From NCBI GenBank assembly GCA_010909165.1, contig VJWM01000011.1, forward strand, positions 1,116,001 through 1,180,000: a stretch of 64,000 nucleotides of DNA, in the 5' to 3' direction. This DNA comes from Anthoceros angustus (lineage: Eukaryota > Plantae > Anthocerotophyta). How positions within the stretch are numbered: position 1 is the stretch's first letter; every line of letters starts with the position of its first letter. Shown here piece by piece: positions 5,303 to 45,054 of the stretch. The notes under the pieces are model-generated. The model saw only the letters and a list, made by a program, of their open reading frames with translations. It searched no databases and had not been told where the DNA came from. Both the position numbers and the translations under genes were made by a program.

Positions 5303-6311
5303 TGTCCAGGCACACCATAATACAAGGCATAATTGGGAAAATGCTCCAGCCAAGTGATAATGCATTCATAATGCTCGCGTATCAAATGTGGTTTCTTCCC
5401 AACACCAAGGGCACCTTTCTTTCTCATAGAATTAGTGGCAGTTGTGGGCAGGCTAAGATTGCCTGAAAGCAGTGATTCTACCATTTTTTTACAGCTGTCA
5501 ATTGCAAGACAAACTGCCATGCTTCAACCCAAGATCACTTAGCCACAAATTGCGTATCTCCTACTGAATGGCGATTGCTTTGAAGCACTCACAACTATTT
5601 GCAGCCAGTTGAAATTACATTTCCAGCCAAGGCGCACCCTTGGCTAGCCACCATCCGCGTGCAAGATTGCCTTCCCATCGGATGGGTGTGCAAGAACAAT
5701 GGGCTTCCCGCCAAACCGGTGTGCAAGAATGAACAAGATAGCTGCGGAAGAGGCGCAACTCGCTGGGACATACACTTGCCTAAAAATTAAAATATCAGAG
5801 GTGTTATTTATGATTGGAGGAGATGGATGATATGTCATGGGTGTCGGGGTTGATACGAGGGGAGACCAAAGCACGATATGAGGGCTGATAAATTTTTAAT
5901 ATTTTATAACTAAGAACCCCTTATTATTATTATTGTTATTTTGTTCGAGTGTTTAACAAACTACCATGCTTTTGCAGGATTCGAACCTTGTCTAGTTTGA
6001 TGTGCTTTATGTGAAAACGATACTCTTCTATCAATCGGAATGTGGACGGAAATTGACTGAAACCGCATGACCAGTCCGGAACGGATCAGATCAACTTCCA
6101 TTCATTTCGGATTTGAGAAAGGCGATGGGAATCGGCTCCAAAGCTCTTTCGTAGTTACGAATCCTTCATGTTACATATGCTAAATATGAACCTATGTATG
6201 TACATGAATCGGTGTTGAATAAATGCCTCGATGGCCTTTACTGCCCATGGACGTTGATGCTAGTTTAGTAGCTATTGTAGCAGAGAAGGGAGGGTCAGCA
6301 CGCAGGGCGAG

Positions 6312-8636
6312 ATGGTGATGCCGCTAGAGCTGCCATTACTGCTGCCCTTGTCGTCAAAATTTTCACTTCTGGATTCGCAGACACTGTTTTTGGTGACCAA
6401 ACGGCAACGGATATGGCTGGAGTCGACATGTGTGCTTCCTCCTCCTCCCAACAAGCAAGGCTCTCTGAGAGATGGAGGATTTCTGTGTCACAGTTTCCCA
6501 CCATCCAAGCTTGGTGGTGGCACACGCTCTGCGTCCTCTGGAGGAAACTACACCATTGAAGGACTGCCGAGAAGAAAGCGACAGGAACTTTTGTGGCAAG
6601 ATTATTTCCTAGATCCCACACAATGGTGGGACAACAGGTCGGATAAGAGGAGTACCCGCCATCCTGACTTCAGGCACAAGACTTCTAAGGAGTGTCTTTG
6701 GCTGGACAGCAGGCACAAGCCTGAATGGGTGGATTCTCAGCTAGCCAGGTGGGATGCCGAGATGAAGGAGTGCGCTGGGTCCTCAAATTGTCCCAGCACT
6801 GGTGGCCCTACGGATGAAGGGCATTGGATGATAAACCGACGCTGTGATGAAGGAGAACTGAGGGAGGCCGTGGAAGCATTGGAGCTCCTTGTGCTGGGAG
6901 GATGTCAGGTTAGCGACACACTCTTCTATCGTGTGCTGAAGATGTGTATGGCGGAAAGTGATCTGACGCTCGGCAGTCGAGTTCATGGTCTTGCTCTCAG
7001 AGGTGGGCACGAATCAAATGCATTTTTGGCTAACCAAGTCATTGGCATGTATGCCTTGCATGGGAAATTGGAGGAAGCAGTGCAGGCATTTCGCAAAGTG
7101 AGTGTACCAAATGCCTACATGTGGTCTTCCATCATTTTGGCACATGCCCGTCATGGGCAACCCAGGGCGGCCATCAACTTTTACCGAGAGATGCGAGAAA
7201 CAAGTGTGAAGCCGGACAACCATATATTTGTAGCAGTCCTCAAGGCTTGTGCCAGTGCAGAGGATCTGGGTTTTGGCAAGCTGGTTCATGCTGATATTTC
7301 TGTGAGTGCTATTAGAGTTAATATCTTTGTTGGCAACAGCCTGGTGAGCATGTATGCAAAGTGCGGGAGCTTGGAGGATGCTCGTAAAGTGTTTGACCGT
7401 CTGCCCTCCAGAGATGTGGTGACCTGGACTGCCATGATTGCTGGATACACACACCAGGGGCTCGGGCGAGAAGCTCTGGCTCTGTTTGGTGGGATGCAGC
7501 AGCAGGGCATTACTCCTGCCGATCATTTTACGTTAGCTTGCCTCCTCCGAGCATGTGCCAGTGTCGGAGCACTGCAACAGGGGAAGCTGCTCCATGAGCA
7601 GGTTCGTGAACGAGGACTTGAGGTTGATCTAGTTGTTGCCAACTGCTTGGTGGATATGTACGCCAAATGTGGGAGCCTTGAAGCTGCTCGCAGAGTCTTC
7701 GATGCCTTGCCCAAACGGGATGTTGTTACATGGAGTGCCCTTCTCAATGGCTATGCTCAACACGGAAATGGGCAAATGGCCATACAGTGTTTTGAGGAGA
7801 TGCTTCAGCATGGAGTGGAGCCTAATGGGACTACGTTTCTTTGCCTTCTAGTGGCATGCAGTCACGCTGGGCTTGTTCGTGAAGGCCAGCAATATTTCAG
7901 GATGATGGTCGAAGAGCATGGTATCTCACCTACTGATTCTCACTACAACTGCATGGTTGATATTCTTGGGCGCTCAGGCCTCCTGGACGAGGCAGAAGAC
8001 ATCTTGCAGACTGAGCCATTTGAGAATTACATGATCGGATGGACGTCTTTGCTGAGTGCCTGCAAATCCCATGGCGACACAGAACGTGGCAGGCGATGTT
8101 TTGAGCATCTTGTAGGATTGGAACCCGCAAATGCAACATCCTATGTTCTCATGGCTAACACCTATGCAAATGCTGGCAGGTGGAATGATGTAGACAGAAT
8201 AGAACATCTGAGAAAGTCTGCAGCTGCATGGAAGAAGCCAGCAAAGGTGTGCATCGAAGTAAACAAGGAAGTGCACGAGTTCACTGTGGGAGAAGAGAGG
8301 TCCGATATAACATCCAAGCTGAAGAGCGTGAGTGCGAGGTTAAAGGAGGAAGGAGGCCATGTGCCACAAACAGAACTGGTGCTGAAGACAGTACCTGAGA
8401 AGGAGAAAGAAGATGCACTGTGTGGCCATGCAGAGAAGTTGGCTTTGGCATATGGCCTGCTCAACACTCCTGACGGCACACCTTTGCTGGTGACCAAGAA
8501 TCTCCGCATGTGCAACGACTGCCACAGTAGCACCAAGATTTTGTCCCGCCTTGAAAGGCGAGAGATTGTAGTGAGAGATGCTCACCGAGTTCACCATTTC
8601 CAGGGCGGGTCCTGCTCATGTGGGGATCGGCATTGA
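6312..8636 (+). CDS. PLS-PPR-E1-E2-DYW:KP (DRH-type) candidate U-to-C editing factor with N-terminal OSB-like PDF motif; intronless, 774 aa
   Basis: About 12 P/L/S motifs (e.g. VVTWTAMIAGY, NSLVSMYAKCGSLEDARKVFD), E1/E2, KKPAKVCIEV (KP box), CGHAEKLALAYG, MCNDCH and C-terminal CSCGDRH. Motif LWQDYFLDPTQWWDNRSDKRSTRHPDFRHK at 6591-6743. Confidence 0.95.
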   Translation: MVMPLELPLLLPLSSKFSLLDSQTLFLVTKRQRIWLESTCVLPPPPNKQGSLRDGGFLCHSFPPSKLGGGTRSASSGGNYTIEGLPRRKRQELLWQDYFLDPTQWWDNRSDKRSTRHPDFRHKTSKECLWLDSRHKPEWVDSQLARWDAEMKECAGSSNCPSTGGPTDEGHWMINRRCDEGELREAVEALELLVLGGCQVSDTLFYRVLKMCMAESDLTLGSRVHGLALRGGHESNAFLANQVIGMYALHGKLEEAVQAFRKVSVPNAYMWSSIILAHARHGQPRAAINFYREMRETSVKPDNHIFVAVLKACASAEDLGFGKLVHADISVSAIRVNIFVGNSLVSMYAKCGSLEDARKVFDRLPSRDVVTWTAMIAGYTHQGLGREALALFGGMQQQGITPADHFTLACLLRACASVGALQQGKLLHEQVRERGLEVDLVVANCLVDMYAKCGSLEAARRVFDALPKRDVVTWSALLNGYAQHGNGQMAIQCFEEMLQHGVEPNGTTFLCLLVACSHAGLVREGQQYFRMMVEEHGISPTDSHYNCMVDILGRSGLLDEAEDILQTEPFENYMIGWTSLLSACKSHGDTERGRRCFEHLVGLEPANATSYVLMANTYANAGRWNDVDRIEHLRKSAAAWKKPAKVCIEVNKEVHEFTVGEERSDITSKLKSVSARLKEEGGHVPQTELVLKTVPEKEKEDALCGHAEKLALAYGLLNTPDGTPLLVTKNLRMCNDCHSSTKILSRLERREIVVRDAHRVHHFQGGSCSCGDRH

Positions 8637-10177: not shown

Positions 10178-11419
10178 TTAGAGGCCTTTAGGCTTCTCGA
10201 CCTTCTGGGTTTGAGACGGTGAATCCGGAAGCACCTGTCTGTCGTCACTGCTGGTTCGCTCGAGGTTAGAACTCTGAGACGAGAACTCTTGGGAATCCTC
10301 CAGAAGCGTGAGATCCTCGACTCCCAAGTCCTCCTTGTTGAGCCTCATGGAACCCACCGAGCCAGACCTCCTCAGGCTGGATCCCAAACGACCCACACTC
10401 GTGGAACGCAGCATCCGTGGGCCGGGGCTTCCCTCCGATGGTAAAGAATTAGCTGAAACGAGCCCCCTCGGAGACCCACCTGCAGCTGCTCCTCCCTTGG
10501 GTGATCCAGATGCTGCCGCCTTTGGAGAAAGAGATGATGCTCCTGATAGAAAGTTCTGCAACTCAACACCACGCACAGCCTGCCTGAAGGATAGAGAATT
10601 CCTGGACAGAGTCCTCTTCAATTCAGCCTGTCCTGGTCTGGCTGCTTCCTCGGTTTTCAGGTCAGTGTCTGGTGCTGCACCTTTAGAGTCCTCCGCTGGC
10701 ATCCTAAACGACCCACCATCGACCCTCCGCCCGCTCTGCCCTCGAACCGATCCCGCTCTCAAGAACGCCCTGAGATTCTCCAAATCAATGGCATCCTGGT
10801 CGTGAATGGTGACCACCACATCCCCGTTCCCCGCAGCTTCCCCATCCGGCTGCTCCTCCGGGGTCGTCCGGTTCACCGAACCAGACCTAAACGAGAAGCG
10901 CCCAGAACTCCAGAATGCGCCAGTGGCCACATCAGAGCCCGGCTCGGGCAGGGCCGGAGCCAGGCTACATCGACAGAGCGGGCAGGTGGTGTGATTCTGA
11001 AACCAGGCATCAATACACTCGGGATGGAAGCAATGCCCGCACTTGGGCAGCATCCGCAACCTCTCCTCATCCTCAAACTCACACAAACATACAGCACACT
11101 CCGTCGTCACATTAGCTGCCTTCAGCGCCCTCGCCTCGCTGTAACTCACCAAAGGAAACGTCTCGTATACGGACTTGTCCAACCCGATCTCCGCCCTCGC
11201 CGCCGTAGCCATCCGCGCGGGATCCCTCAAATGAGCCAATTGTGCTTCGTACTCCGAAGACGCGCACCTCTTCACATACACGGAGAAGAATCCCATGATG
11301 AAGAACGCAGACACCAACACCACGATTATGATCGCCATGCTAGCATTAAAGTGCGAGTAAGCGTTGAACGTGCTGGGCGGAGGCGGAGGAATCGGCGGCG
11401 GAGAAAAGAGAGAACCCAT
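10178..11419 (-). CDS. ATL-family RING-H2 E3 ubiquitin ligase (TM helix, GLD motif, RING-H2); intronless
   Basis: MAIIIVVLVSAFFIMGFFSVY (TM), GLDKSVYETFP and CAVCLCEFEDEERLRMLPKCGHCFHPECIDAWFQNHTTCPLCR. Likely start is ATG 11419 (MGSLFSP). Confidence 0.92.
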   Translation of the reverse strand: MGSLFSPPPIPPPPPSTFNAYSHFNASMAIIIVVLVSAFFIMGFFSVYVKRCASSEYEAQLAHLRDPARMATAARAEIGLDKSVYETFPLVSYSEARALKAANVTTECAVCLCEFEDEERLRMLPKCGHCFHPECIDAWFQNHTTCPLCRCSLAPALPEPGSDVATGAFWSSGRFSFRSGSVNRTTPEEQPDGEAAGNGDVVVTIHDQDAIDLENLRAFLRAGSVRGQSGRRVDGGSFRMPAEDSKGAAPDTDLKTEEAARPGQAELKRTLSRNSLSFRQAVRGVELQNFLSGASSLSPKAAASGSPKGGAAAGGSPRGLVSANSLPSEGSPGPRMLRSTSVGRLGSSLRRSGSVGSMRLNKEDLGVEDLTLLEDSQEFSSQSSNLERTSSDDRQVLPDSPSQTQKVEKPKGL

Positions 11420-11885
11420 ATCCCGATCCCTCCTGATACAACCCAAAACCGAGCCCCTTCCCCACCCTTCCCCGGAACCCACAAATCCCTGAAAACCCAC
11501 AAATCCTTTGAAACTTCCACTCCCGATCCGCTCCTGCCCAGCTCGCAAAGGCTAAACACGACGCAACTCCTCCTTCCTCCTCAAACCTGTACAGGATCCG
11601 CTCATTGCAAGATGGAACCACCGCTCCTTGATGCTCTTGAGAAAACAATGAAGCTCTCCTTCCCCTTCCAGCAACCTCCGCTCCATGCGCATAATATACA
11701 GGCGTAATATACAAGCGCGGACTCGGCACTCGTTCTTGCTCGGCCTTGCTCTGGTCTTGATGTTCCGGGTGCTGCAACCGGGATCGGTAAAAGATGGTCG
11801 TTCAATCCGGCCCCGGTCGTGAGGAGGGCGAGGCCCAGCCTTCGAGGCAGAAGACCTCTCTCCACCAGGAGTCAGCCCGCGGGAT

Positions 11886-14359: not shown

Positions 14360-16877
<2,518 letters not shown>

Positions 16878-22289: not shown

Positions 22290-25200
22290 ATGTCCTCTTC
22301 GTCTACCTTGGGTGGACCTGTAGGAATGTGGGACGCAATTCAGCTCCGCTGCCATGACACCGGAAGCGGAGGAATGGGATTGTGTAGGGAGGCCAAGACA
22401 TGGTCGGGAGTGGCGGGAAGGTATCACCTGAGGCACCGCCGCGCCGCGGAGAGACCAGGAGTATGCGTGGCCATTTCCACTACAGGAGACTGGATGAAGC
22501 GGGTGTTCTCTGGATCGTCCGGGTACTACAAGAGTGCGAATCATCCTGACCGAGCCGAGCTTCTGTCTGAGGTAGTTCGGAAATGTGCGATTGTCCGGGG
22601 TTGTGTTGTGGTAATAGGTTCACATGGTGACATCCCTTGGTGCTGCTGTGCCAGGCAAGGTTTAGCAGAGAGTTGGAATGGCACCGGACCAACTATGAGC
22701 GAGTGGGTGAGATTGAGCCGCCGCCGATTTTCCCGTTTTGGCGGAAGCAGGAGTTCGAGGCTCGGTCTCTGACTAGAAAGGTTCTCGAGCTTACCAGGAA
22801 GAGGCAGCTCAATCAAGTACGAGTTTCCTCATATGTGTGGAATATTGCATCGGGCATGAAGTTTGGAGAACCCTGACAGTCAGAGTCACGTCCTGGACAG
22901 ATTTTGAAGCTGGTGGAAACAGCTAAACAGGAGAGATACGAGCTGCACCGGATAACTATGAATGCGGTGATGGAGGCTTGTGTGCATTGTAATGACACGG
23001 ACCGTGCCATAGGCATTTTCGAAGAGATGCTACGCCCGGGTGCCTGTGGTGTTGATACTGTAACATATGGGATCCTAATAAAGGTCTGCTGAGGCTTGCA
23101 GCATTGCTGTTCTGCTGTTTGTATGTGAAGGCAAGCCTGTGTGTTGGCTCACTCTCGTTGAGCTTTACGTTTTCCTCTTGGTGTGCAGGGCCTTGGGCAA
23201 GCGAAAAGACTGAGTGATGCGTTTCTCGTATTTGAAGCAATCGAGAAAGGCACAGCTCCAGGAGCTCCTAAGTTGTCGGATGTACACCTCAACACTCTAG
23301 TGAATGCATGTGCCGAGGCAGGTTAGGTTCAATTTGCATCGTTTGTGCGTTCTGTCTCACTCTCGTCGGTGTTTGTCCAATCTGTGAATGCTAATGTGAC
23401 GGCCTTCTTCTTCAGTTCTGACCTGATGATGTTGTTCCGAGCAGGAGAATCTCTTCGTGCACGAGGTATACTATTAAGGTATCGCTCTTCGGTTGACCAG
23501 TCAGGACCATCCGCTTTCACATACAACCTACTGATTAAGGTTACCTTCTTTTCCTGCACAGTGCCATTCTGCAATTTTCCGCCAGCTGTGGATCCTGATT
23601 ATGAGTGGCATTGTCCCAGGGATATGCAAGATCGGACAATCCTTTGGAGGCTCTGAAGGTGATCGATGAGATGCGTTCTAATGGCTTAGAACCGCAGCAG
23701 CTGACTTATAACTCTCTTATTCTGGCTTGTGTCCGGGGCGGGGACACACTGAAAGCCCTTGATTTTTTGAGGCAAATGAAGGTTGGTATACGAGGCTACC
23801 GTAAGCGTTGTCCTGAAACATCCTCTTTGTCAGCTCAAAGTCCAAAGTAACGAATTTTTGTGATATCGCAGGAGGAAGCGAAGAGGCTTAATTCTCCGGA
23901 AATGCTTCCAGATGTTGTAACATATACCACTCTAATAAAGGTCAGTGGGGTTGACTGTCTTTGTAGGAATGTGCTCTACTTGTCGTCCCTACCAGGCTGC
24001 ACCTCATTCTGTTCGCTTATCCTGTGCAGGGTCTTGCTTTGGATGGCGATCTTCAAAAGGTTTTGGATATGGTGGATGAAATGAAACAGACACCAACATG
24101 TGTATTGGATCGTGTTGCTTATACAGCGATCATCGACGCCTGTATAGAGGCCGGATCACCCAGACGTCAGTATGCTACCCTGCACGGCCTCCCTTCTTCC
24201 TGAGGCTGTGGACACCTTGTGTGTGTTCAAAGGAGCTAACAGATTTTGTTGTTATGCAGAGGGCTTTGTGATGTTGCAAGAGTTGAAGGAGAGGGGGCAG
24301 GAAAGTCCTGTTCTCAGACCAAGGGCCCATGTGTTTCTTGCTCTTATGAGGGCCTTCGCCGATGAAGGTGATGTTGAGATGGTGACCTCGTTGAGAGAGC
24401 GTCTAATACCGGAGGCTGCGGGGTTTGTTTGGCCTGAGGAGCGTGCAGAAGCAGATGAGCTACTGATGGAAGCTGCTGTTGCTGCAGGGCAGGTAAAGCG
24501 ATAAAGTCATTATCCATCCTTTCTGCTCACCTCAGTGACAGCAAACCTAACGAGCATTCTTGTTTCAAGCAGCTGGGTCTAGCAAAACATGTGCTGCGAA
24601 CGATGGTCGGTCTGAAGAAAGGCATCCCTCTGACAAGACGCGCCTACATTGTGAGTGCTACCGACCCAACGAAGGTGCCTATGCCTGTAGCAAGCCATTT
24701 ACCATATCAACGGTAATAACCCCACCGTTGGTCTGCAGGCCGTCGTCCGATTGCAAGCACTCACAGGCTTCAAAGAAGACATCTTCAGCCCTCTTCAGCT
24801 GCGGGTGCGTTGAAGTCCCTGTCGTGTGCATTGCTGTGCAAAAGCGCGGTGAACGCTATCGTAACCCAAGTACCTGCTTCCCTTGCTTACAGGTTCCTCC
24901 AAGTGAGAGCGTGGACAGGGTAATGCTGCCCTTCGCTGAGGCAAACACCGTCTCTGAAGACCTGAAGGTGGCAGACGTAGCATTTCGTTTTTTCAGAGAA
25001 GACGTGATACCCGTCGTGGACAAAGCAGGAGCATACGTTGGTTCTGTCCACTGCCGAGACTGCACCGAGGTCCACCTCGCTTACCTTGTCTGTGCTTGCA
25101 AACTTTTCGTGTTGGAGCAACCTGTTGATCTCCTCTGTCACGGGGGATGTGCACAGATGGATGCCCGGTTAGGCGACCTGAAGAAGAGAACTCCCATTGT

Positions 25201-25420
25201 GACCAACGCTACTCCAGTCTCCAAAGTTGTCAGTCTGCTGCTGAAGTCTCCGTCACCATTCATCACCGTGATAGACAGCAGCACGGCATCCTACCGAAAG
25301 GGCGACTTGTTAGAAGGCCAGGTCCTTGGTTTCCTTGTTCCCAGCAGCGTTTTCGTTCTGGACAGCCGGAGATCATGGAACGCAATTACTACGTCGCCTA
25401 ACCTTGATCAATATTACTAA
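22290..25420 (+). CDS. P-class PPR protein with C-terminal CBS domains (At5g10690/CBSPPR1-like); multi-exon
   Basis: Exons ARSLTRKVLELTRKRQLNQ, TMNAVMEACVHCNDTDRAIGIFEEM, TYNSLILACVRGGD, PDVVTYTTLIK, RPRAHVFLALMRAFA and EERAEADELLMEAA; CBS-like VADVAFRFFREDVIPVVDKAGAYVGSVH. GT-AG introns. Confidence 0.85.
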
Positions 25421-26270: not shown

Positions 26271-28874
26271 TCAATGCCGATCACCACACGAACAGGACCC
26301 GTTTTGGAAACGGTGAACTCGGTGTGCGTCTCGAACTATGATGTCCCGCTCCTCAAGGCGTGACATTACCTTGGTGCTACTGTGGCAGTCGTTGCACATG
26401 CGAAGGTTTTTAGTGACTAGCAAGGGTGTGCCATCCGGAGTGTTGAGGAGGCCATAAGCTAAGGCAAGTTTCTCAGCGTGCCCACACAGAGAATCCTCCT
26501 TCTCCTGCTCAGACACTGCTCTTAACACCAGCTCGGTTTTGGGCACATGGCCTCCTTCGTCTTTTAACCTCGAGTTCACGCTTTTCAGCTTTGAAGAAAT
26601 ATCAGCCCTGTCTTCTCCAACGGTGAACTCGTGCACCGTGTTCTCCACTTCGATGCACGCCTTTGCAGGCTTCTTCCAAGCACCTGCAGACTTCCGCAGG
26701 CTTTCGATCTCGTCCACGTCCTTCCATCTGCCGGCGTTTGCATAGATGTTGCCCAAGAGCACATATGGACTTGCACTTTGAGGCTCCAGTTTCACAATGC
26801 GGTCGAAGCATCTCCGTCCTCGCTCGGCATCATCATGGTTTTTGCAGGCAGTCAGCAGGGCTCTCCAGCCCACCACATTGCTCTCATACGGTGCGGTCTG
26901 CAAGATGTGTTCTGCCTCATCTAGACGGCCTGCCCGCCCGAGAAGATCCACCATGCAGTTGTGGTGGTAGTCGGAGGGGGCAATCTTATGCTCTTCCATT
27001 ATCTTGAAATACCGCTGCCCCTCATCCACCAGGCCTGCGTGACTGCAGGCCACAAGGAGGGAACTGAAAGTGGTCTCGTTTGGCTCAAATCCCTGCTCAC
27101 ACATGTCTTCGAAACACCGTATGGCCATTGGAGCATTGCTGTCCTCTGCATAGCCTTTGAGAAGTGCATTCCATGCCACCACATTCTTGGTGGACAATGT
27201 GTCGAAAACGGAACGAGCCTCCTCCAAGCTCCCGCACTTTGCATACATGTTCACCAGGCTGCTGCCGATGGAGCCCTGTGCTTCCAGGCCTCGTTTCCGA
27301 ATCTGTGCGTGAAGCTCCTTGCCCGTCTGCAGAGCCCCGACACTCGCACATGCTTGCAACAGGCAAGTGAAGGTAACAGCATCAGCGACACTGACCCCCT
27401 CCTGCTGCATACTCGTGTACAACAAAAGGGCTTGCTGGCCCATACCCTGCTGGGCATAGCCTGCGATCATGGCTGTCCATGTGACCACATCTTTTGTGGG
27501 CAACTTGTCAAACACTGTGCGAGCATCTTCCAAGCTCCCACATTTTGCATACATGTCCACCAAGCAGTTACCCACAACAGCATCCCCTTCCATCCCACCT
27601 TGCCGAACCTGCACGTGCAGCCGCTTCCCCTGCTTAAGGTCGCCCACACTCGCACAAGCTCGAAGCAGGCACACAAACGTCACCTTGTTGGCTGTAGTCA
27701 CACCCTCCTTTTGCATGCTCCCATACAGGGCCAAGGCTTCCCTGCCCAGTCCCTTCTGCGTATAACCTGAAATCATAGCAGTCCATGTTACCACATCCTT
27801 GGTGGCCAAGCTGTCAAACACTCTCCGAGCATCTTCCAAGCTTCCACACTTGGAGTACATGTTTATCAGGCTGTTTCCCACAAAGATGTTGATTCTCACC
27901 GCACTCTTGGCGATGTCCTCATGAACCAGCTTCCCAGAAACCAGATCCTCTGCACTGGCACAAGCCTTCAGCACAGCCACAAAGATGTGATTATCCGGCT
28001 TCACCTTCGTCTCCCTCATCTGTCGGTAAAACCTCATGGCCTCCTTGGGCTGCCCATTCCGGGCATGTGCCAGAATGATAGAGGACCACGTATACGCATC
28101 TGGAGCACTCACCCTCCCAAAAGCCTGCGCTGCCTCCTCCAATTGTCCATGAGAAGAATACATGCCTATAATGTGGTTCGCCAGGGACGCATTCCCCTGG
28201 AGCCCAGCTGTCAGAACAAGAGCATGCACCCGTCTACCAAGCCTTAGGTCCCTTTCTTCGACGCACATCCTCAACACCCGACGGAAAGGAACATCACGAA
28301 CACGACATCCTCTCTGCACCAGGACCTCCAACTCCTCCACAGCCTCCCGCACCTTCCCCTCCTCACATCGTCTGTTCAGCGTTTCCAGCACAGAATCTCC
28401 TTCCTCCCCGCGCCCACCACCATTTCCTGCACCGGGAGTAGATGCCATCCCAGCTGGCGAGCCCATCTGCGAATCCACCCACCCCGGCTTGTGGCGGCTA
28501 TGTAGCCACAGCCCCTCCTTGGACGTCTTGTGCCTGAAGTCAGGATGGCGGGGGCTCCTCTTGTCCTCCCTGTTGTCCCACCATTGCGCTGGATCCGAGA
28601 AGTACTCCTGCCACAGGAGCTCCTCCCGCTCCTTTCTGGGCAGCCCTTCCACGGCATAGTTCTGTGCAGAGGAAGCTGTCCGCGCCTCACTCCCCAGCTT
28701 GGCTGGTGGACAGCTATGACACGCGAATCCGCCATCAATCGCTGCACCTTGCTTGCCTCCCACCACAGTGTCAGGCATCCATGGCCCCCGCTGCTTGATG
28801 GGAGCAGCACGGGAATCCGGGAGTGCAGAATTCGACAACGGCAGCAACAGATGCAGGTCCAGCGGCATCGCCAT
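26271..28874 (-). CDS. PLS-PPR-E1-E2-DYW:KP (DRH-type) with N-terminal PDF motif; intronless, 867 aa; paralog of 6312-8636
   Basis: About 15 PPR motifs, KKPAKACIEV, CGHAEKLALAYG, MCNDCH and CSCGDRH. PDF motif LWQEYFSDPAQWWDNREDKRSPRHPDFRHK at 28464-28616. Confidence 0.95.
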   Translation of the reverse strand: MAMPLDLHLLLPLSNSALPDSRAAPIKQRGPWMPDTVVGGKQGAAIDGGFACHSCPPAKLGSEARTASSAQNYAVEGLPRKEREELLWQEYFSDPAQWWDNREDKRSPRHPDFRHKTSKEGLWLHSRHKPGWVDSQMGSPAGMASTPGAGNGGGRGEEGDSVLETLNRRCEEGKVREAVEELEVLVQRGCRVRDVPFRRVLRMCVEERDLRLGRRVHALVLTAGLQGNASLANHIIGMYSSHGQLEEAAQAFGRVSAPDAYTWSSIILAHARNGQPKEAMRFYRQMRETKVKPDNHIFVAVLKACASAEDLVSGKLVHEDIAKSAVRINIFVGNSLINMYSKCGSLEDARRVFDSLATKDVVTWTAMISGYTQKGLGREALALYGSMQKEGVTTANKVTFVCLLRACASVGDLKQGKRLHVQVRQGGMEGDAVVGNCLVDMYAKCGSLEDARTVFDKLPTKDVVTWTAMIAGYAQQGMGQQALLLYTSMQQEGVSVADAVTFTCLLQACASVGALQTGKELHAQIRKRGLEAQGSIGSSLVNMYAKCGSLEEARSVFDTLSTKNVVAWNALLKGYAEDSNAPMAIRCFEDMCEQGFEPNETTFSSLLVACSHAGLVDEGQRYFKIMEEHKIAPSDYHHNCMVDLLGRAGRLDEAEHILQTAPYESNVVGWRALLTACKNHDDAERGRRCFDRIVKLEPQSASPYVLLGNIYANAGRWKDVDEIESLRKSAGAWKKPAKACIEVENTVHEFTVGEDRADISSKLKSVNSRLKDEGGHVPKTELVLRAVSEQEKEDSLCGHAEKLALAYGLLNTPDGTPLLVTKNLRMCNDCHSSTKVMSRLEERDIIVRDAHRVHRFQNGSCSCGDRH

Positions 28875-32725: not shown

Positions 32726-35700
32726 TCACGGCCGACCCTTACAACTGCAGGAACCATCTGCAAATCGATGCACGCGGTACCCATCCCTTACGACAATGTC
32801 TCTCTGTTCAAGCCTTGACAGGATCTCCGTGGAACTGTGGCAGTCGCTGCACATGCGTAGATTCTTCGTTACCAACAGAGGCGTCCCACTCGGAGTGTTC
32901 AATAGGCCAAACGCCAGAGCTAGCTTCTCAGCATGCCCACAAAGCACATCTTCCTTTTCATCCTCAGACAACGGCTTCAACACCAACTTTGTGTGAGGTT
33001 CATGGCCTCCTTCCTGCTTCAGACGTCCTTTCGTGCTCTCTACCTGAAGAGCAATATCCTCTCTCCTTTCTCCCACTGTAAATCGATGTACCTGCTTATT
33101 CACCTCAATGGTCGCCACTGCATGTTTCTTGTTAGCTCCTGCTACCCTTCTCTGTGATTCAATCCTATCTACATCAGTCCACATACCTGCATCTGCGTAG
33201 GCATTGGCCATGAGCACATATGCAGGGGCCTCCTGGGGGACCAGCCTAACAATCCTTTCAAAACACCACATCGCCCTCTTTATATCCCCGTGGCTTCTGC
33301 AGGCATTCAACAACGACCTCAAGCCCACAACATTACTTTGGCCCTCACATAACAATAGCATCTTCTCAGCCTCATCTAAATGGCCTGCCCGCCCAAGAAG
33401 ATCAACCATGCAGGTATAATGCTCAATAGTCGGTTTGATGCCATGCTTCAGCCATGGAATCAAAGTGCTTGCGACCCTCCTGGACCAGTCCTCATGACTG
33501 CATGCTACTAGAAGTACCGACTTGTGGACATGCAAAATTCAAAGCACGCCACAGGTGAACCCCTTGCTGCTGCAATGGTACTCCTGCATGTACATGGCTT
33601 CTATCACCAACTTCGCTACACGACATTAACGTTCCCTGTCACAGTCTCCTCCTATTGCATCCTGCCAGTGTAGGAAACGATGTCGGTGCCAAGTGATCCG
33701 TGCCTGGCCGTTCCAGACCGTGCGCATTACTGCACTCAGTCTGCAAAAGTTTGCACTGCTTCCAATTGCATAAACAGACTTGTTTGTGGGCAGCAGCTTG
33801 TAGATTTGCCAAGTGGGAACATCGAGGATGCAGAACAGGTGTTTGGCCATCTATCCCAGCGAGATGCAGGGTCATGGACTGCCGTGATTGCAGCAACATG
33901 GTCAGCAAGGTCAAGGACATAGAAGCTTTGCAGCTCTATGCCGAGATGCAAGCTCCAGGTGTGAATCCACATGAAGGTCGACCCCCAACAAGAAAAGGCA
34001 ATTTTCTCTGGCGTACAGACTTGACCATCGGGTACTCCTTCATTATTCTCACGGCCGACCCTTACAACTGCAGGAACCATCTGCAAATCGATGCCGCGGT
34101 ACCCATCCCTTACGACAATGTCTCTCTGTTCAAGCCTTGACAGGATCTCCGTGGAACTGTGGCAGTCGCTGCACATGCGTAGATTCTTCGTTACCAGGCG
34201 TCCCACTCGGGTGTTCAATAGGCCAAACGCCAGAGCTAGCTTCTCAGCATGCCCACAAAGCACATCTTCCTTTTCATCCTCAGACAACGGCTTCAACACC
34301 AACTTTGTGTGAGGTTCATGGCCTCCTTCCTGCTTCAGACGTCCTTCGTGCTCTCTACCTGAAGAGCAATATCCTCTCCTTTCTCCCACTGTAAATCGAT
34401 GTACCTGCTTATTCACCTCAATGGTCGCCACTGCATGTTTCTTGTTAGCTCCTGCTACCCTTCTCTGTGATTCAATCCTATCTACATCAGTCCACATACC
34501 TGCATCTGCGTAGGCATTGGCCATGAGCACATATGCAGGGGCCTCCTGGGGACCAGCCTAACAATCCTTTTCAAAACACCACATCGCCCTCTATATCCCG
34601 TGGCTGCAGGCATTCAACAACGACCTCAAGCCCACAACATTACTTTGGCCCTCACATAACAATAGCATCTTCTCAGCCTCATCTAAATGGCCTGCCCGCC
34701 CAAGAAGATCAACCATGCAGGTATAATGCTCAATAGTCGGTTTGATGCCGTGCTGTGTAGCCATGGAATCAAAGTGCTTGCGACCCTCCTGGACCAGTCC
34801 CTCATGGCTACATGCGACTAGAAGGCAAGTAAAAGTAGCACCATCAGGCTGAATACCGGCAACTAACATCTCCTCAAAACAAGCTAGTGCTCTGTGACCT
34901 TCATCACAAGTACCATACCCAGATATCAGGGCATTCCATGTCACCACATTCTTTGTGTTCATGCTGTCAAAAACCTGGCATCTTCCAGTTCACCACATTT
35001 GCATACATGTCCACCAGGCAGGTGCCCACCAGTATGTCACCCAGCAGTCCTCTTTCGACGATCTGTGAGTGCAGCTGTGGATGCGAGGTTAGGCACTTTC
35101 CCTTTAATACTGCAAAGGACCCAACCATCTCGCCGAATACTAGAAGTACCGACTTGTGGACATGCAAAATTCAAAGCACGCCACAGGTGAACCCCTTGCT
35201 GCTGCAATGGTACTCCTGCATGTACATGGCTTCTATCACCAACTTCGCTACACGACATTAACGTTCCCTGTCACAGTCTCCTCCTATTGCATCCTGCCAG
35301 TGTAGGAAACGATGTCGGTGCCAAGTGATCCGTGCCTGGCCGTTCCAGACCGTGCGCATTACTGCACTCAGTCTGCAAAAGTTTGCACTGCTTCCAATTG
35401 CATAAACAGACTTGTTTGTGGGCAGCAGCTTGTAGATTTGCCAAGTGGGAACATCGAGGATGCAGAACAGGTGTTTGGCCATCTATCCCAGCGAGATGCA
35501 GGGTCATGGACTGCCGTGATTGCAGCAACATGGTCAGCAAGGTCAAGGACATAGAAGCTTTGCAGCTCTATGCCGAGATGCAAGCTCCAGGTGTGAATCC
35601 ACATGAAGGTCGACCCCCAACAAGAAAAGGCAATTTTCTCTGGCGTACAGACTTGACCATCGGGTACTCCTTCATTATTCTCACGGCCGACCCTTACAAC

Positions 35701-38502
35701 TGCAGGAACCATCTGCAAATCGATGCCGCGGTACCCATCCCTTACGACAATGTCTCTCTGTTCAAGCCTTGACAGGATCTCCGTGGAACTGTGGCAGTCG
35801 CTGCACATGCGTAGATTCTTCGTTACCAGGCGTCCCACTCGGGTGTTCAATAGGCCAAACGCCAGAGCTAGCTTCTCAGCATGCCCACAAAGCACATCTT
35901 CCTTTTCATCCTCAGACAACGGCTTCAACACCAACTTTGTGTGAGGTTCATGGCCTCCTTCCTGCTTCAGACGTCCTTCGTGCTCTCTACCTGAAGAGCA
36001 ATATCCTCTCCTTTCTCCCACTGTAAATCGATGTACCTGCTTATTCACCTCAATGGTCGCCACTGCATGTTTCTTGTTAGCTCCTGCTACCCTTCTCTGT
36101 GATTCAATCCTATCTACATCAGTCCACATACCTGCATCTGCGTAGGCATTGGCCATGAGCACATATGCAGGGGCCTCCTGGGGACCAGCCTAACAATCCT
36201 TTTCAAAACACCACATCGCCCTCTATATCCCGTGGCTGCAGGCATTCAACAACGACCTCAAGCCCACAACATTACTTTGGCCCTCACATAACAATAGCAT
36301 CTTCTCAGCCTCATCTAAATGGCCTGCCCGCCCAAGAAGATCAACCATGCAGGTATAATGCTCAATAGTCGGTTTGATGCCGTGCTGTGTAGCCATGGAA
36401 TCAAAGTGCTTGCGACCCTCCTGGACCAGTCCCTCATGGCTACATGCGACTAGAAGGCAGGTAAAAGTAGCACCATCAGGTTGGATACCGGCATCTAACA
36501 TCTCCTTAAAACAAGCTAGTGCTCTGTGAGCGTCATCACAACTCCCATACGCAGATATCAACGCCGTCCATGTAACCACGTCCTTCGAGGCCATGCTGTC
36601 AAACACTTGGCGGGCATCTTCCAGCTCACCACATGTTGCATACATGTCCACCAGGCAGGTACCCACCAGTATGTCACCCAGCAGTCCTCTTTCGACGATC
36701 TGTGAGTGCAGGTCCCTGCCCTTCTGTAAGGCACCAGTGCTTGCACAGGCCTTTAGAAGGCAAGCAAAGTAAAATGATCAGCCAAAACCAGCCCTCCTGC
36801 TCCATTTGTCCATACAGAAAGAGTGCCTCATGTCCGAGCCCTTGCTCGCATACCCAGCAATCAGGCATTCCATGTCACCACATTCTTTGTGGCCATGCTG
36901 TCAAAAACCTGGTGTGCATCTTTCATTGCACCACATTTGGCATACCCAGATATTAGGACATTCCATGTCACCACATTCTTTGTGGGCAAGCTGTCAAAAA
37001 CCTGGCGTGCAGCGTTCAGTTCACCACATTTTGCATACATGTCCACCAGGCTGGCGCCAACAAATAAGTGAGGCGGAATGCCACTATGAACCACATCACT
37101 GTGCACCTTTCTGCCAGATTCCAAGTCAGCCGCAAATGCACAAGCTTGAAGGGCAGCTGCAAAGACTTGAGCATCGGCCTTCACTCCCGACCTACGCATC
37201 TCATGGTACAGTTGTATGGCCTCCTTAGGTTTCCCGTGTTTAGCATGAGCAGATATGATAGAAGACCACGTGATAACATCTGGCTTGCCTACTCTGGTGA
37301 ACACATCCATGGCCTCCTGTAGCCTACATCCAGATGCATACATTCGCAAGATATGGTTCCCCAAGTATACATTCGATTCGGACCCGAGTTTAACACTGAG
37401 GTCATGAACTCGTCGCCCGCAACCAGATCCTTCTTAGCTGTACACAGTTTCAGCACAGTGCAAAACAGAGACAGAGGAATAGCAGAGTCTGTCTGCGCCA
37501 GAGATTCCAGGGCTCTAACGGCCTCAGAAAGCTTCCCCTGCTGACAAAACGTGCTCACGATTGCAGCCGTAGCGACACCAATTCCCCATCCTGCACGCCT
37601 GCCAGATTCAAGCTTATCCGGTGACCTGGACTTGGAAGGAGAGGTACCATGACCCATCTCCATATCCAAGGAAACGAGCTGCTCATCAACCCAAGCTGGC
37701 TTAAACAAGTCGTTTACCCACAGCACCTCGCCGGACCCCTTACGACGGAAGTCAGGCGAACGGGAACTCGTCTTCTCTTGTCTGTTGTCCCACCACCTGC
37801 ATACATGCGCAATATATGGTTCCCCAAGTATACATTCGATTCGGACCCGAGTTTAACACTGAGGTCATGAACTCGTCGCCCCGCAACCAGATCCTTCTTA
37901 ACTGTACACAGTTTCAGCACAGTGCAAAACAGAGACAGAGGAATAGCAGAGTCTGTCTGCGCAAGAGATTCCAGGGCTCTAACGGCCTCAAGCTTCCTCC
38001 TGACAAAACGTGCTCACGATTGCAGCCGTAGCGACACCAATTCCCCATCCTGCACGCCTGCCAGATTCAAGCTTATCCGGTGACCTGGACTTGGAAGGAG
38101 AGGTACCATGACCCATCTCCATATCCAAGGAAACGAGCTGCTCATCAACCCAAGCTGGCTTAAACAAGTCGTTTACCCACAGCACCTCGCCGGACGACGG
38201 AAGTCAGGCGAACGGGAACTCGTCTTCTCTTGTCTGTTGTCCCACCACCTGGTAGGCTCCAGAAAAAATTGTTGCCACAATTGCTCCTGCTCCTGCTGCT
38301 GTCGACGGCCATCGCTGGATAACCCGTCCCTACCCACACGTTTTCTCGGAAGTGGAACTGCTCGGCTCCTAACACTGCTGCGCCTGGAGGCTTGGTTATT
38401 TGCCGACGATGGACTCCCTGAGGTGAGGTGAGCGGGAGCTCCTCGTAGAATCCCTGTACACACACCAATTTGTTGGGTCCACAACAGTCCCCGCCGACGC
38501 AT
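32726..38502 (-). pseudogene. PDF-PLS-PPR-DYW:KP (GRP-type) locus X; fragmented as assembled, with a triplicated DYW end and a duplicated 5' segment
   Basis: Intact C-terminal ORF 32726-33535 (KKHAVATIEV, CGHAEKLALAFG, MCSDCH, CSCKGRP). PPR ORFs 36223-36666, 36861-37364 and 37289-37726. 5' ORF 38173-38502 contains LWQQFFLEPTRWWDNRQEK. May be an intact gene in the true genome. Confidence 0.8.
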
Positions 38503-40860: not shown

Positions 40861-43800
40861 ACATGTTAATTAGTGTGGTTTTTTGGAATCCTGGCAAGAA
40901 TTCCAAGATGAGAAGTTATCCAGCTTTGCCAAGCTTAATTCTGGATGCTTAGATTGTTTTTGGTTTGTAGAATTGGTCATGTGTGTCATGTGTGTCTCAT
41001 TATGCGGATCTCTAATTATTGCTTCCAAGTTGAGATTGAGTTTAGACACGTTTTCACAAGTCTATCTCAGTGTGACTTCCTTGAAAATACCAGGTTGCAT
41101 TCTAACTAGTTTACTACTGCTAATGGGTTTTATGTGTATGTGAAGAGAACCTTGTGTTTGTGTGAGATTCTTGTTTTATTTTGGATGGGGTGGTGTGGAA
41201 ATTTTTGCATCCGATGTGTGGATAGAGAACGCACCGGTAATTATGGTGTTGAGCAGATCGTTATTGTATTTTTCTAGAATTAATTATTCGTAAATAATCG
41301 AAGATAAGCGAAAATGCTTGAAACACTTTTCACCGCGACCCACAAGGGCTCCTCTTGGGTGTTCTCTACGAATCGGCATTTCTATCAAATTTTTCCTCCC
41401 AATAAAAAGCTCATATGCAACACTCTTGTCCTTGTGGGGTTAAGAGGTTAAGGAAGAGAATAGAATAACAGTCCACTGATTTGGTAAAAATAATGAAGGT
41501 AAAAATAGAACAACATTCTGCTGATAAGACTAAACAGTTTCCATTTCCACTTCACTACTTCACTCGCAACATCTTGATGAGACTATGCATCGCGTAAATT
41601 ATTTTCCTAATTTTCATTATTTTTCTAATTTGCAATATAGAACGTGAATCATTTTGCTCATTTGCAATGTACAAGAATAAATTATTTTGCTAATTTGTAA
41701 TATCGGAAAGATAGAAACGCTTACATGGACTCTTATTACCTATACGAGTTGATAGAGTTGGTTGATCTTTTCAACTTCCTTGCTTTTGGTTTTTCCTATA
41801 TGGAGTCCGTTGATTGGTCCTCTTGTCTTCCTTGCTCTTGGTTGGACATAGCTGATTGATCTTTTGTCTTCCTCTTAGTTTCTTCACAATGGATGCTTTT
41901 TTCACCAAAATTATTTTATTTTACTAATCATCTCATAAAACATAAATTGAGAAGACATACACTCAACTTAAATTAATATCTATCAATTTATATTTTTAAC
42001 AATATTTTAAACAGCTACGAAGAAAAACATCTATGACAGCTTCCACTCGTCTATGGACTTGAATAAAAGAATCTTTTCTCTTCTAACAAAGTCTTTTATA
42101 GCTTGTTGAATTGAATATCCACGAGAGTTTGTGCAGCTGTGGATGCGAGGTTAGGCACTTTCCCCTTTAATACTGCAAAGGACCCAACCATCTCGCCGAA
42201 TACTAGAAGTACCGACTTGTGGACATGCAAAATTCAAAGCACGCCACAGGTGAACCCCTTGCTGCTGCAATGGTACTCCTGCATGTACATGGCTTCTATC
42301 ACCAACTCTGCCACACAACATTCACTTCGCCTGTAACATGTCTCTTCATATTGCATCCTGCCAGTCATAGAAGAAAGTTTTTGTGCCAAGTGAATCCATG
42401 CCTGTGTTCCAGATCGTCCCAAGTACTGCACATAGTCTGCAGGAAGTCTGCACTCCTTCCAAGTACATAGACAGACTGAACACCTTTGTGCTGCTGCAAT
42501 GGTACTCCTGCATTTGCATAAGTTCTATCACCAACACCGCAACACAACATTCACGTTGACTGTAACAAGTCTCCTCCTATTGCATCCTGCCAGTGTAGGA
42601 AACGATGTCGGTGCCAAGTGATCCGTGCCTGGCTGTTCCAGACCGTGCGCATTACTGCACTCAGTCTGCAAAAGTTTTGCACTGCTTCCAATTGCATAAA
42701 ACAGACTTGTTTGTGGGCAGCAGCTTGCTAAGTATGTAGATTTGCCAAGTGGGAACATCGAGGATGCAGAACAGGTGTTTGGCCATCTATCCCAGCGAGA
42801 TGCAGGGTCATGGACTGCCGTGATTGCAGCAACATGGTCAGCAAGGTCAAGGACATAGAAGCTTTGCAGCTCTATGCCGAGATGCAAGCTCCAGGTGTGA
42901 ATCCATGCCTGTGTTCCAGATCGTCCCAAGTACTGCACATAGTCTGCAGGAAGTCTGCACTCCTTCCAAGTACATAGACAGACTGAACACCTTTGTGCTG
43001 CTGCAATGGTACTCCTGCATTTGCATAAGTTCTATCACCAACACCGCAACACAACATTCACGTTGACTGTAACAAGTCTCCTCATATTGCATCCTGCCAG
43101 TCATGGAAGAAAGTGTCGGTGCCAAGTAATCCATGCCTGCCAGTTCCAGATAGGCTGAAGTACTACACAGAGTCTGCAGAAAGTCTGCACTCCTTCCAAT
43201 GACTTAAACAGACTAGTCTGTGGGCAGCTGGTAACCATTTATGCCCAGTGCTGGGGCATCAAGGACGCAAAACAGGTGTTTGTCCTTCTGTCCCAGCCCG
43301 ATGCAGGGTCAAGGAGATAAAGTTTTGCAGCTCTATGCCGAGATGCAAGCTTCAGGTCTGAGGCCACATGAAGGTCGACCCCCAACAAGAAAAGGCAATT
43401 TTCTCTGGCGTACAGACTTGACCATCGGGTACTCCTTCATTATTCTCACGGCCGACCACAACTGCAGGAAGTCTGCACTCCTTCCAAGTACATAGACAGA
43501 CTGAACACCTTTGTGCTGCTGCAATGGTACTCCTGCATTTGCATAAGTTCTATCACCAACACCGCAACACAACATTCACGTTGACTGTAACAAGTCTCCT
43601 CATATTGCATCCTGCCAGTCATGGAAGAAAGTGTCGGTGCCAAGTAATCCATGCCTGCCAGTTCCAGATAGGCTGAAGTACTACACAGAGTCTGCAGAAA
43701 GTCTGCACTCCTTCCAATGACTTAAACAGACTAGTCTGTGGGCAGCAGCTTGGTAACCATTTATGCCCAGTGCTGGGGCATCAAGGACGCAAAACAGGTG

Positions 43801-43971
43801 TTTGTCCTTCTGTCCCAGCCCGATGCAGGGTCAAGGAGATAAAGTTTTGCAGCTCTATGCCGAGATGCAAGCTTCAGGTCTGAGGCCACATGAAGGTTAA
43901 CCCATCCCAAGCAGAGAAAAGCAATATTCTCTGGCATACATACTTCAGCAGCGGGTAATCCTTCATTATTC

Positions 43972-44410
43972 TCACGGTCGACCCTTACAACTGCAGCAAC
44001 CACCTGCGAATCGATGCACACGGTACCCATCCCTGACGACAATGTCTCTCTGTTCAAGCCTTGACAGGATCTCCGTGGAACTGTGGCAGTCGCTGCACAT
44101 GCGTAGATTCTTCGTTACCAACAGAGGTGTTCCACTTGGAGTGTTCAATAGGCCAAACGCCAGAGCTAGCTTCTCAGCATGCCCACAAAGCACATCTTCC
44201 TTTTCATCCTCAGACAACGGCTTCAACACCAACTTTGTGTGAGGTTCATGGCCTCCTTCCTGCTTCAGACGTCCTTTCGTGCTCTCTACCTGAAGAGCAA
44301 TATCCTCTCTCCTTTCTCCCACTGTAAATCGATGTACCTGCTTATTCACCTCAATGGTCGCCACTGCATGTTTCTTGTTAGCTCCTGCTACCCTTCTCTG
44401 TGATTCAATC
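43972..44410 (-). pseudogene. Isolated GRP-type DYW domain fragment
   Basis: ESQRRVAGANKKHAVATIEV...CGHAEKLA...CCSCKGRP, joined at 44402-44410 (gattcaatc) to non-coding repeat sequence. Confidence 0.8.
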
Positions 44411-45054
44411 ACCAACTCTGCCACACAACATTCACTTCGCCTGTAACATGTCTCTTCATATTGCATCCTGCCAGTCATAGAAGAAAGTTTTTGTGCCAAG
44501 TGAATCCATGCCTGGCAGTTCCAGATCGTCCCAAGTACTGCACATAGTCTGCAGGAAGTCTGCACTCCTTCCAAGTACATAGACAGACTGAACACCTTTG
44601 TGCTGCTGCAATGGTACTCCTGCATTTGCATAAGTTCTATCACCAACACCGCAACACAACATTCACGTTGACTGTAACAAGTCTCCTCATATTGCATCCT
44701 GCCAGTCATGGAAGAAAGTGTCGGTGCCAAGTAATCCATGCCTGCCAGTTCCAGATAGGCTGAAGTACTACACAGAGTCTGCAGAAAGTCTGCACTCCTT
44801 CCAATGACTTAAACAGACTAGTCTGTGGGCAGCTGGTAACCATTTATGCCCAGTGCTGGGGCATCAAGGACGCAAAACAGGTGTTTGTCCTTCTGTCCCA
44901 GCCCGATGCAGGGTCAAGGAGATAAAGTTTTGCAGCTCTATGCCGAGATGCAAGCTTCAGGTCTGAGGCCACATGAAGGTTAACCCATCCCAAGCAGAGA
45001 AAAGCAATATTCTCTGGCATACATACTTCAGCAGCGGGTAATCCTTCATTATTC

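Follow-up and report, generated by a model that had tools for sequence, protein, structure and literature searches.

In plant organelles, RNA editing owes both its specificity and its catalysis to PPR-DYW proteins, on which programmable editors of the C-to-U and U-to-C kinds are built. Their PPR arrays bind RNA in parallel, with the N-terminus toward the 5′ end of the RNA. In hornworts, two types of DYW:KP proteins, with DRH and GRP ends, are candidate U-to-C editors and formed the basis of the synthetic editors KP1-KP3; the U-to-C editing activity of DYW:KP has been shown only for such synthetic consensus proteins (PMC9478123). A different set of plant organellar proteins, OSB, carries the PDF motif, a 50-residue element that is responsible for the binding of OSB to single-stranded DNA (ssDNA) (PMC6963530, PMC6451138, PMC4166229). 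In this study we analysed a 64,000-nucleotide stretch of the hornwort Anthoceros angustus genome (GenBank assembly GCA_010909165.1, contig VJWM01000011.1, positions 1,116,001 to 1,180,000 of the forward strand), hereafter referred to as the window and numbered from its first letter, in which a tryptophan-rich block precedes the PPR array of DYW:KP genes. Judging by the DRH and GRP ends of these genes, the window most likely represents nuclear DNA. We are practically certain that this block is a PDF motif of the OSB type and that the motif is distributed among PPR proteins of non-seed land plants.

The PDF motif ahead of the PPR array

Translation placed the block, 51 residues in length, after the leader and before the PPR array at each of the five loci in question, that is, at positions 6591-6743 (copy 1, forward strand) and, on the reverse strand, at 28464-28616 (copy 2), 38135-38280 (copy 3), 47251-47403 (copy 4) and 55474-55626 (copy 5, with WC replacing WW). 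Alignment of the four complete copies gave 27 invariant positions, and agreed with the consensus proposed in an earlier reading of this DNA made from the letters alone (hereafter the sequence-only reading). That reading had described an ungapped block at the five loci; the block is present at all five, but copy 3 carries a 7-nt deletion, by which the frame is shifted after PDFRR. A sixth copy, 5′-truncated and 41 residues long, was found at 37676-37798 (reverse strand) within a rearranged GRP-type locus, and its DNA is 100% identical to that of copy 4.

For identification of the block, a profile made from the four copies was searched exhaustively against 1.84 billion representative proteins. 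A total of 931 proteins were matched at E≤1e-3, including 363 at E≤1e-10, and with this number of matches a chance origin of the block is excluded. In most of the matched proteins, which have lengths of 200-600 residues, one to five PDF copies lie at the C-terminus. The Amborella 'protein OSB3, chloroplastic/mitochondrial' was matched at E 2e-56 with four PDF copies, and several of the matches other than PPR proteins have the SSB OB-fold of Pfam. Across 123 PDF motifs there are invariant positions at W, D, R and D and nearly invariant ones at P, W, K, P, F, K, L, W, P and W; at every conserved position the consensus of the PPR-linked motifs is identical to that of the OSB-linked motifs. A word-indexed search with the motif region of ORF1 alone gave a single candidate and no match, which we take as a limit of the index, given the 931 matches of the exhaustive profile search.

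The structure of the block was predicted by AlphaFold2 (AF2) from the alignment of 123 motif sequences, with a predicted local distance difference test (pLDDT) score of 94 and a predicted template modelling (pTM) score of 0.77. The model consists of a helix, three short strands and a second helix. Its only matches in the Swiss-Prot set of the AlphaFold Database (AFDB) were the PDF regions of Arabidopsis OSB1-4, with template modelling (TM) scores of 0.74-0.88, root mean square deviations of 0.9-1.3 Å and 41-46% identity, both sides of this comparison being predicted. No Pfam model corresponds to the block, and its sequence matched no PDB chain; Foldseek of the model against PDB gave nothing below E 1, and the best result of the VIA wide structure search, to unrelated helical proteins, had a Z of 2.9. 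A dsRBD-like fold, suggested by the helix-strand-strand-strand-helix order, was dropped after these Foldseek and VIA results. From the OSB3 profile match, the matches with SSB OB-fold and the structural matches to OSB1-4, we conclude that the window block is the OSB PDF motif by sequence and by predicted fold, in line with the OSB/PTAC9 assignment of the sequence-only reading.

Only two genes of the window are intact over the whole order of leader, PDF, PPR, E and DYW:KP, one at 6312-8636 (forward strand; 774 aa, a single open reading frame [ORF]) and the other at 26271-28874 (reverse strand; 867 aa). Both match Pfam PPR, E_motif and DYW_deaminase, and both carry KKPA, HAEKLA and the GDRH end of the DRH type. 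In the 774-aa protein the leader (residues 1-81; 6312-6554), presumed to be a targeting peptide, and PDF copy 1 are followed by the PLS-type PPR array with E motifs (residues 166-644; 6807-8243) and by the deaminase-like DYW:KP domain (residues 682-774; 8355-8636; DYW_deaminase at 1e-36), with the DRH end. In the full-length AF2 model residues 1-81 are predicted to be disordered (pLDDT <50), PDF occupies residues 87-155, a hinge of low confidence covers residues 156-164, and a solenoid of helical repeats starts at residue 166 (pLDDT >90). PDF is thus modelled as a module of some 60 residues with a fold of its own, which follows a disordered leader and is joined to the first PPR helix by a hinge of about 10 residues.

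Between the two DRH paralogs, 42 of 51 residues are identical within the block, as against 11 of 36 in the stretch directly after it. The ratio of nonsynonymous to synonymous substitution rates (dN/dS), computed at near-saturated dS, was 0.069 for PDF, 0.087 for the DYW domain and 0.122 for the PPR array, in contrast to 0.31 for the leader and 0.36 for the stretch after the motif. As judged from these sequence comparisons, PDF is under strong purifying selection between the paralogs, and both the conservation of the block next to a diverged stretch and the selection upon it are as the sequence-only reading had proposed. With respect to expression, a 1098-nt contig from an RNA-library run was identical and colinear with the window over 6258-7355, with zero depth upstream of 6190, which is consistent with an unspliced, motif-containing transcript starting about 50 nt before the ATG, with the reservation that RNA-labelled libraries may contain DNA.

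Distribution of the motif among PPR proteins

In order to follow the motif among PPR proteins, we fetched the homologs of ORF1 and of one Sphagnum PDF-PPR-DYW protein, and scanned this set of 260 PPR proteins with a hidden Markov model of the motif. An N-terminal PDF was found in 106 of the 260, a proportion not to be read as a frequency because relatives of the two queries are over-represented in this set. In the profile search, PPR proteins with N-terminal PDF made up 14 of the best 150 matches. The motif is always N-terminal in PPR proteins, with a median start at residue 41, and is present in one to three full copies. The bearers with a named source come from mosses (seven Sphagnum species and Ceratodon purpureus), the liverwort Calypogeia fissa, the lycophyte Diphasiastrum complanatum and, among ferns, Adiantum, Ceratopteris and Pteridium. 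The motif is absent from all PPR matches of Cryptomeria and Ginkgo, the gymnosperms sampled.

After classification of the same 260 proteins by their DYW domain, PDF was present in 40 and absent from 69 of the proteins with HSE, the canonical type; for the HAE (KP-like) proteins outside the window the corresponding numbers were 1 and 14, for other or partial DYW domains 14 and 24, and for proteins with no DYW in the gene model 51 and 47. This distribution bears directly on the possibility that PDF is an accessory specific to U-to-C editing, with a function linked to reverse editing (amination) by DYW:KP domains. All PDF copies of the window are indeed on DYW:KP genes. The motif is carried, however, by 40 proteins with canonical HSE/DYW, including those of the mosses Sphagnum and Ceratodon and of the liverwort Calypogeia, while reports of U-to-C editing are confined to hornworts, lycophytes and ferns (PMC9478123, PMC4915041); it is carried also by 51 proteins without DYW, and by only one of the 15 KP-like matches outside the window. 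We therefore regard a role confined to U-to-C editing as extremely improbable, and a specific link of PDF to this reaction as refuted.

These counts also decide some claims of the sequence-only reading. PDF had been proposed there as a feature of U-to-C editors, with canonical editors consisting of PPR-E1-E2-DYW only; neither statement is supported, since the motif is common on C-to-U-type and DYW-less PPR proteins, a pattern that the reading itself had named as one that would refute it. The proposal that the fusion is older than the split of DRH and GRP types is supported, and by a wide margin. For the question of U-to-C editing itself PDF matters less than had been hoped, because it is not specific to DYW:KP proteins. 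Its presence in more than 100 PLS-PPR proteins, from hornworts and liverworts to mosses, lycophytes and ferns, suggests that the editors of early land plants have a functional part that has gone unstudied.

On a tree of the motifs, the PPR-linked PDFs cluster together, with 5 label changes compared with about 25-34 when the labels were shuffled. One group is formed by the window copies together with other hornwort-like and fern motifs, and a separate group by those of lycophyte, moss and liverwort. The tree, being based on 63 columns with few supported branches, shows this clustering but does not establish a single origin. Taken as a whole, the PDF-PPR fusion is real, ancient, widespread and apparently undescribed. 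No description was found in the searchable literature, which did not reach some of the founding papers on OSB and DYW:KP, in agreement with the sequence-only reading, which knew of none; the four plant papers naming the PDF motif or domain in the same literature do not connect it with PPR proteins.

Besides OSB and PPR proteins, PDF motifs adjoin a kinesin motor domain in one protein (P0050, 1526 aa), and are arranged in arrays of 11-13 copies in two others (P0001, 1160 aa; P0003, 908 aa), all three of which are possible fusions of gene models. The motif is a mobile module and not a feature of OSB alone, and these proteins suggest a greater mobility and capacity for expansion than the OSB literature implies.

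Possible roles of the N-terminal PDF

On balance, we slightly favour, as a whole, the interpretation that PLS-class PPR proteins of non-seed land plants have had PDF since ancient times as an accessory at the N-terminus, in one to three copies, with single-strand binding as its probable role. The first part of this interpretation is shown by the identity and distribution of the motif: the accessory is borne by E-type, canonical DYW and DYW:KP proteins, it is neither a hornwort nor a U-to-C invention, and the DRH and GRP genes of the window inherited it. The functional part of this interpretation, namely that PDF may add sequence-independent binding of single-stranded nucleic acid, is put forward more tentatively; it is suggested by the PPR-linked copies, which keep all the positions conserved in OSB PDFs, and by the binding of OSB PDFs to ssDNA. 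Since the N-terminus of a PPR array faces the RNA 5′ end, PDF would come to lie directly on the 5′ (upstream) side of the PPR footprint, where it could raise the affinity for the transcript or the residence time on it. Alternatively, it could hold the factor on ssDNA of the transcribing nucleoid. The adjoining RNA-binding PPR array favours a role on the RNA side.

The alternative on the DNA side takes up the tether idea, the one put first in the sequence-only reading. In this alternative PDF would bind ssDNA (the non-template strand, R-loops or replication intermediates), and would thereby concentrate the editor on organellar chromosomes under active transcription, for co-transcriptional editing. 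In OSB it is the PDF that binds ssDNA, and the preference of OSB1 and OSB2 for ssDNA over RNA (PMC4166229, PMC6451138) favours such a tether; the retention of all conserved OSB positions in the PPR-linked motifs and the flexible hinge of the full-length model also agree with it. Many editors of the same lineages, however, are without PDF, and we judge a nucleoid tether to be rather unlikely.

A third possibility is that PDF serves protein-protein contact, either recruiting partners or multimerising the factor, and that it may replace MORF helpers, which are confined to seed plants (PMC13386178). The PDF-PPR fusions were found only in lineages without MORF genes (for the MORF distribution see PMC13386178), and a tetrameric state is reported for AtOSB2 (PMC6963530). 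By this analogy an oligomerisation module is conceivable, but the complementarity between PDF and MORF rests on a small and biased sample of seed-plant PPR proteins, and we consider such a module quite unlikely. The complementary distribution of PDF-PPR and MORF, which is weakly supported, enters also into a wider proposal, in which PDF would be a built-in helper of non-seed PLS-PPR editors, acting as a clamp on single strands that links editing with nascent transcripts or with nucleoid ssDNA, and would have turned dispensable and been lost when the trans-acting MORF helpers of seed plants arose. We regard this proposal as speculative and unlikely. If it were true, it would explain how bryophyte factors edit without MORFs, and PDF would supply engineered editors of the C-to-U and U-to-C types with an affinity module that is small and portable.

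Several observations weigh against the favoured interpretation of PDF as an ancient, probably single-strand-binding accessory. In addition to the bias of the sample of 260 proteins, most KP-like matches outside the window lack PDF, indicating that the module is dispensable for many editors; several of these PDF-less matches resemble N-terminally truncated gene models, and others have a leader yet no PDF. One KP-like protein (P0201, 791 aa, with a GDAH end) retains a decayed PDF remnant at residues ~20-37, showing the loss of PDF within KP-type proteins. The PDF motifs of the window have isoelectric points of 4.7-8.1 and are thus not strongly basic. With the preference of OSB1 and OSB2 for ssDNA (PMC4166229), a role on the RNA side is not the default, and synthetic PPR-DYW:KP editors made from PPR and DYW consensus, for which no PDF-like module is mentioned, perform editing in bacteria as well as in human cells (PMC9478123). 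Finally, a contig from a related species, ~95% identical to the window over 6270-7279, carries changes of F to S and of LW to AR at nearly invariant positions of PDF, and the same contig has a stop codon in the post-PDF stretch of the DRH gene and two 1-nt deletions. Because of the changes at nearly invariant positions, the stop and the frameshifts, this contig was rejected as evidence for conservation; the related-species copy is probably a transcribed pseudogene or a paralog.

Signs of decay raise the further possibility that PDF is a relic, i.e., an inherited leader segment that is now functionless. Three of the five loci of the window are broken, the copy of P0201 has decayed, and the related-species contig is altered at conserved motif positions. 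Against this, the dN/dS of 0.069 between the intact paralogs, albeit at saturated dS, is as low as that of the catalytic domain, the motif is conserved across bryophytes and vascular plants, and its fold is predicted confidently. A relic is accordingly very improbable.

Other loci of the window and comparison with known systems

In contrast to the two intact DRH-type genes, the three GRP-type loci are broken or rearranged, with split ORFs and duplicated E2/DYW fragments. At one of them, an ORF of 640 aa (45703-47625, reverse strand) encodes leader, PDF copy 4 and PPRs and stops after S2/E1; it is followed by duplicated E2/DYW fragments at 45350-45778, 44844-45317 and 43972-44739. Many short RNA-library contigs of the repeat family map to this locus (43.9-47.7 kb), and one of them has an extra A after 45769, near the end of the 640-aa ORF, which could represent a paralog or an assembly error of the window that falsely truncates the ORF. 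The GRP-type loci near 53.3-55.8 kb and 35.4-38.5 kb are each divided into several ORFs; the first piece of the former (261 aa; 55063-55848, reverse strand) includes PDF copy 5, and further pieces extend to 53284, ending in KGRP.

The GRP-type material (32726-38502, 43333-45778 and 52600-55848) consists of near-identical fragments, partly in tandem, that form a patchwork. E2/DYW pieces with the KGRP end are located at 32726-33535, 33736-34530, 35368-36162, 43972-44739, 44844-45317 and 53284-53775, and interleaved with such pieces is a repeated non-PPR segment, with an ORF start of MDYLAPTLSS, at about 43446-43652, 44540-44739 and 52608-52964. The patchwork looks like the result of recent segmental duplication and decay, or possibly of assembly collapse. 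The neighbours unrelated to PDF include an ORF for a RING-H2 finger (10178-11548, reverse strand), an exon-like ORF (14360-15166, reverse strand) that matches the C-terminal part of monodehydroascorbate reductase, and an ORF with a weak match to the CBS domain (24560-25420, forward strand).

Among known systems, the RRM-PPR, MORF-PPR and OZ-PPR fusions and the MORF/RIP helpers resemble the window genes in that an extra nucleic acid- or protein-binding module is added to the PPR scaffold, but PDF is not among the PPR domain fusions catalogued (PMC13386178), and it is unmentioned in a 2026 survey of the domain fusions of editing factors. Domain surveys probably miss PDF because Pfam has no model for it.

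The likeness to OSB proteins lies in the same signature of about 50 residues, with profile E-values to 1e-56, and in the predicted fold, for which the TM scores and identities are given above. The arrangement differs: in OSB the PDFs are C-terminal, in one to five copies after an SSB-like OB-fold, whereas in the window PDF is N-terminal and is followed by PPR and the deaminase-like domain. As no Pfam match to the SSB OB-fold was obtained for the window proteins, they share the PDF module with OSB and yet are not OSB proteins.

With the hornwort DRH/GRP PPR-DYW:KP proteins, the window genes have in common the PLS array, the E motifs and DYW:KP with KPA box, HAE site and DRH/GRP ends. The KP signature consists of KPA in place of the PG box and HAE in place of HSE, with GDRH ends in both intact ORFs and KGRP in the GRP fragments. 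For these proteins only the PPR-E-DYW part has been described and engineered, and the accessible papers mention no N-terminal PDF. Work on PPR-DYW proteins has treated the region before the PPRs as a disposable leader, and it is in this region that a conserved, folded domain related to ssDNA binding was found.

The canonical PLS-DYW factors of C-to-U editing, such as PPR56 and PPR65 of moss, share the PLS-E-DYW plan with the window genes; the characterised C-to-U factors have been expressed without their N-terminal region (PMC10482289). Many canonical-type PLS-DYW proteins of Sphagnum, Ceratodon, Calypogeia and Diphasiastrum bear the same N-terminal PDF as the genes of the window.

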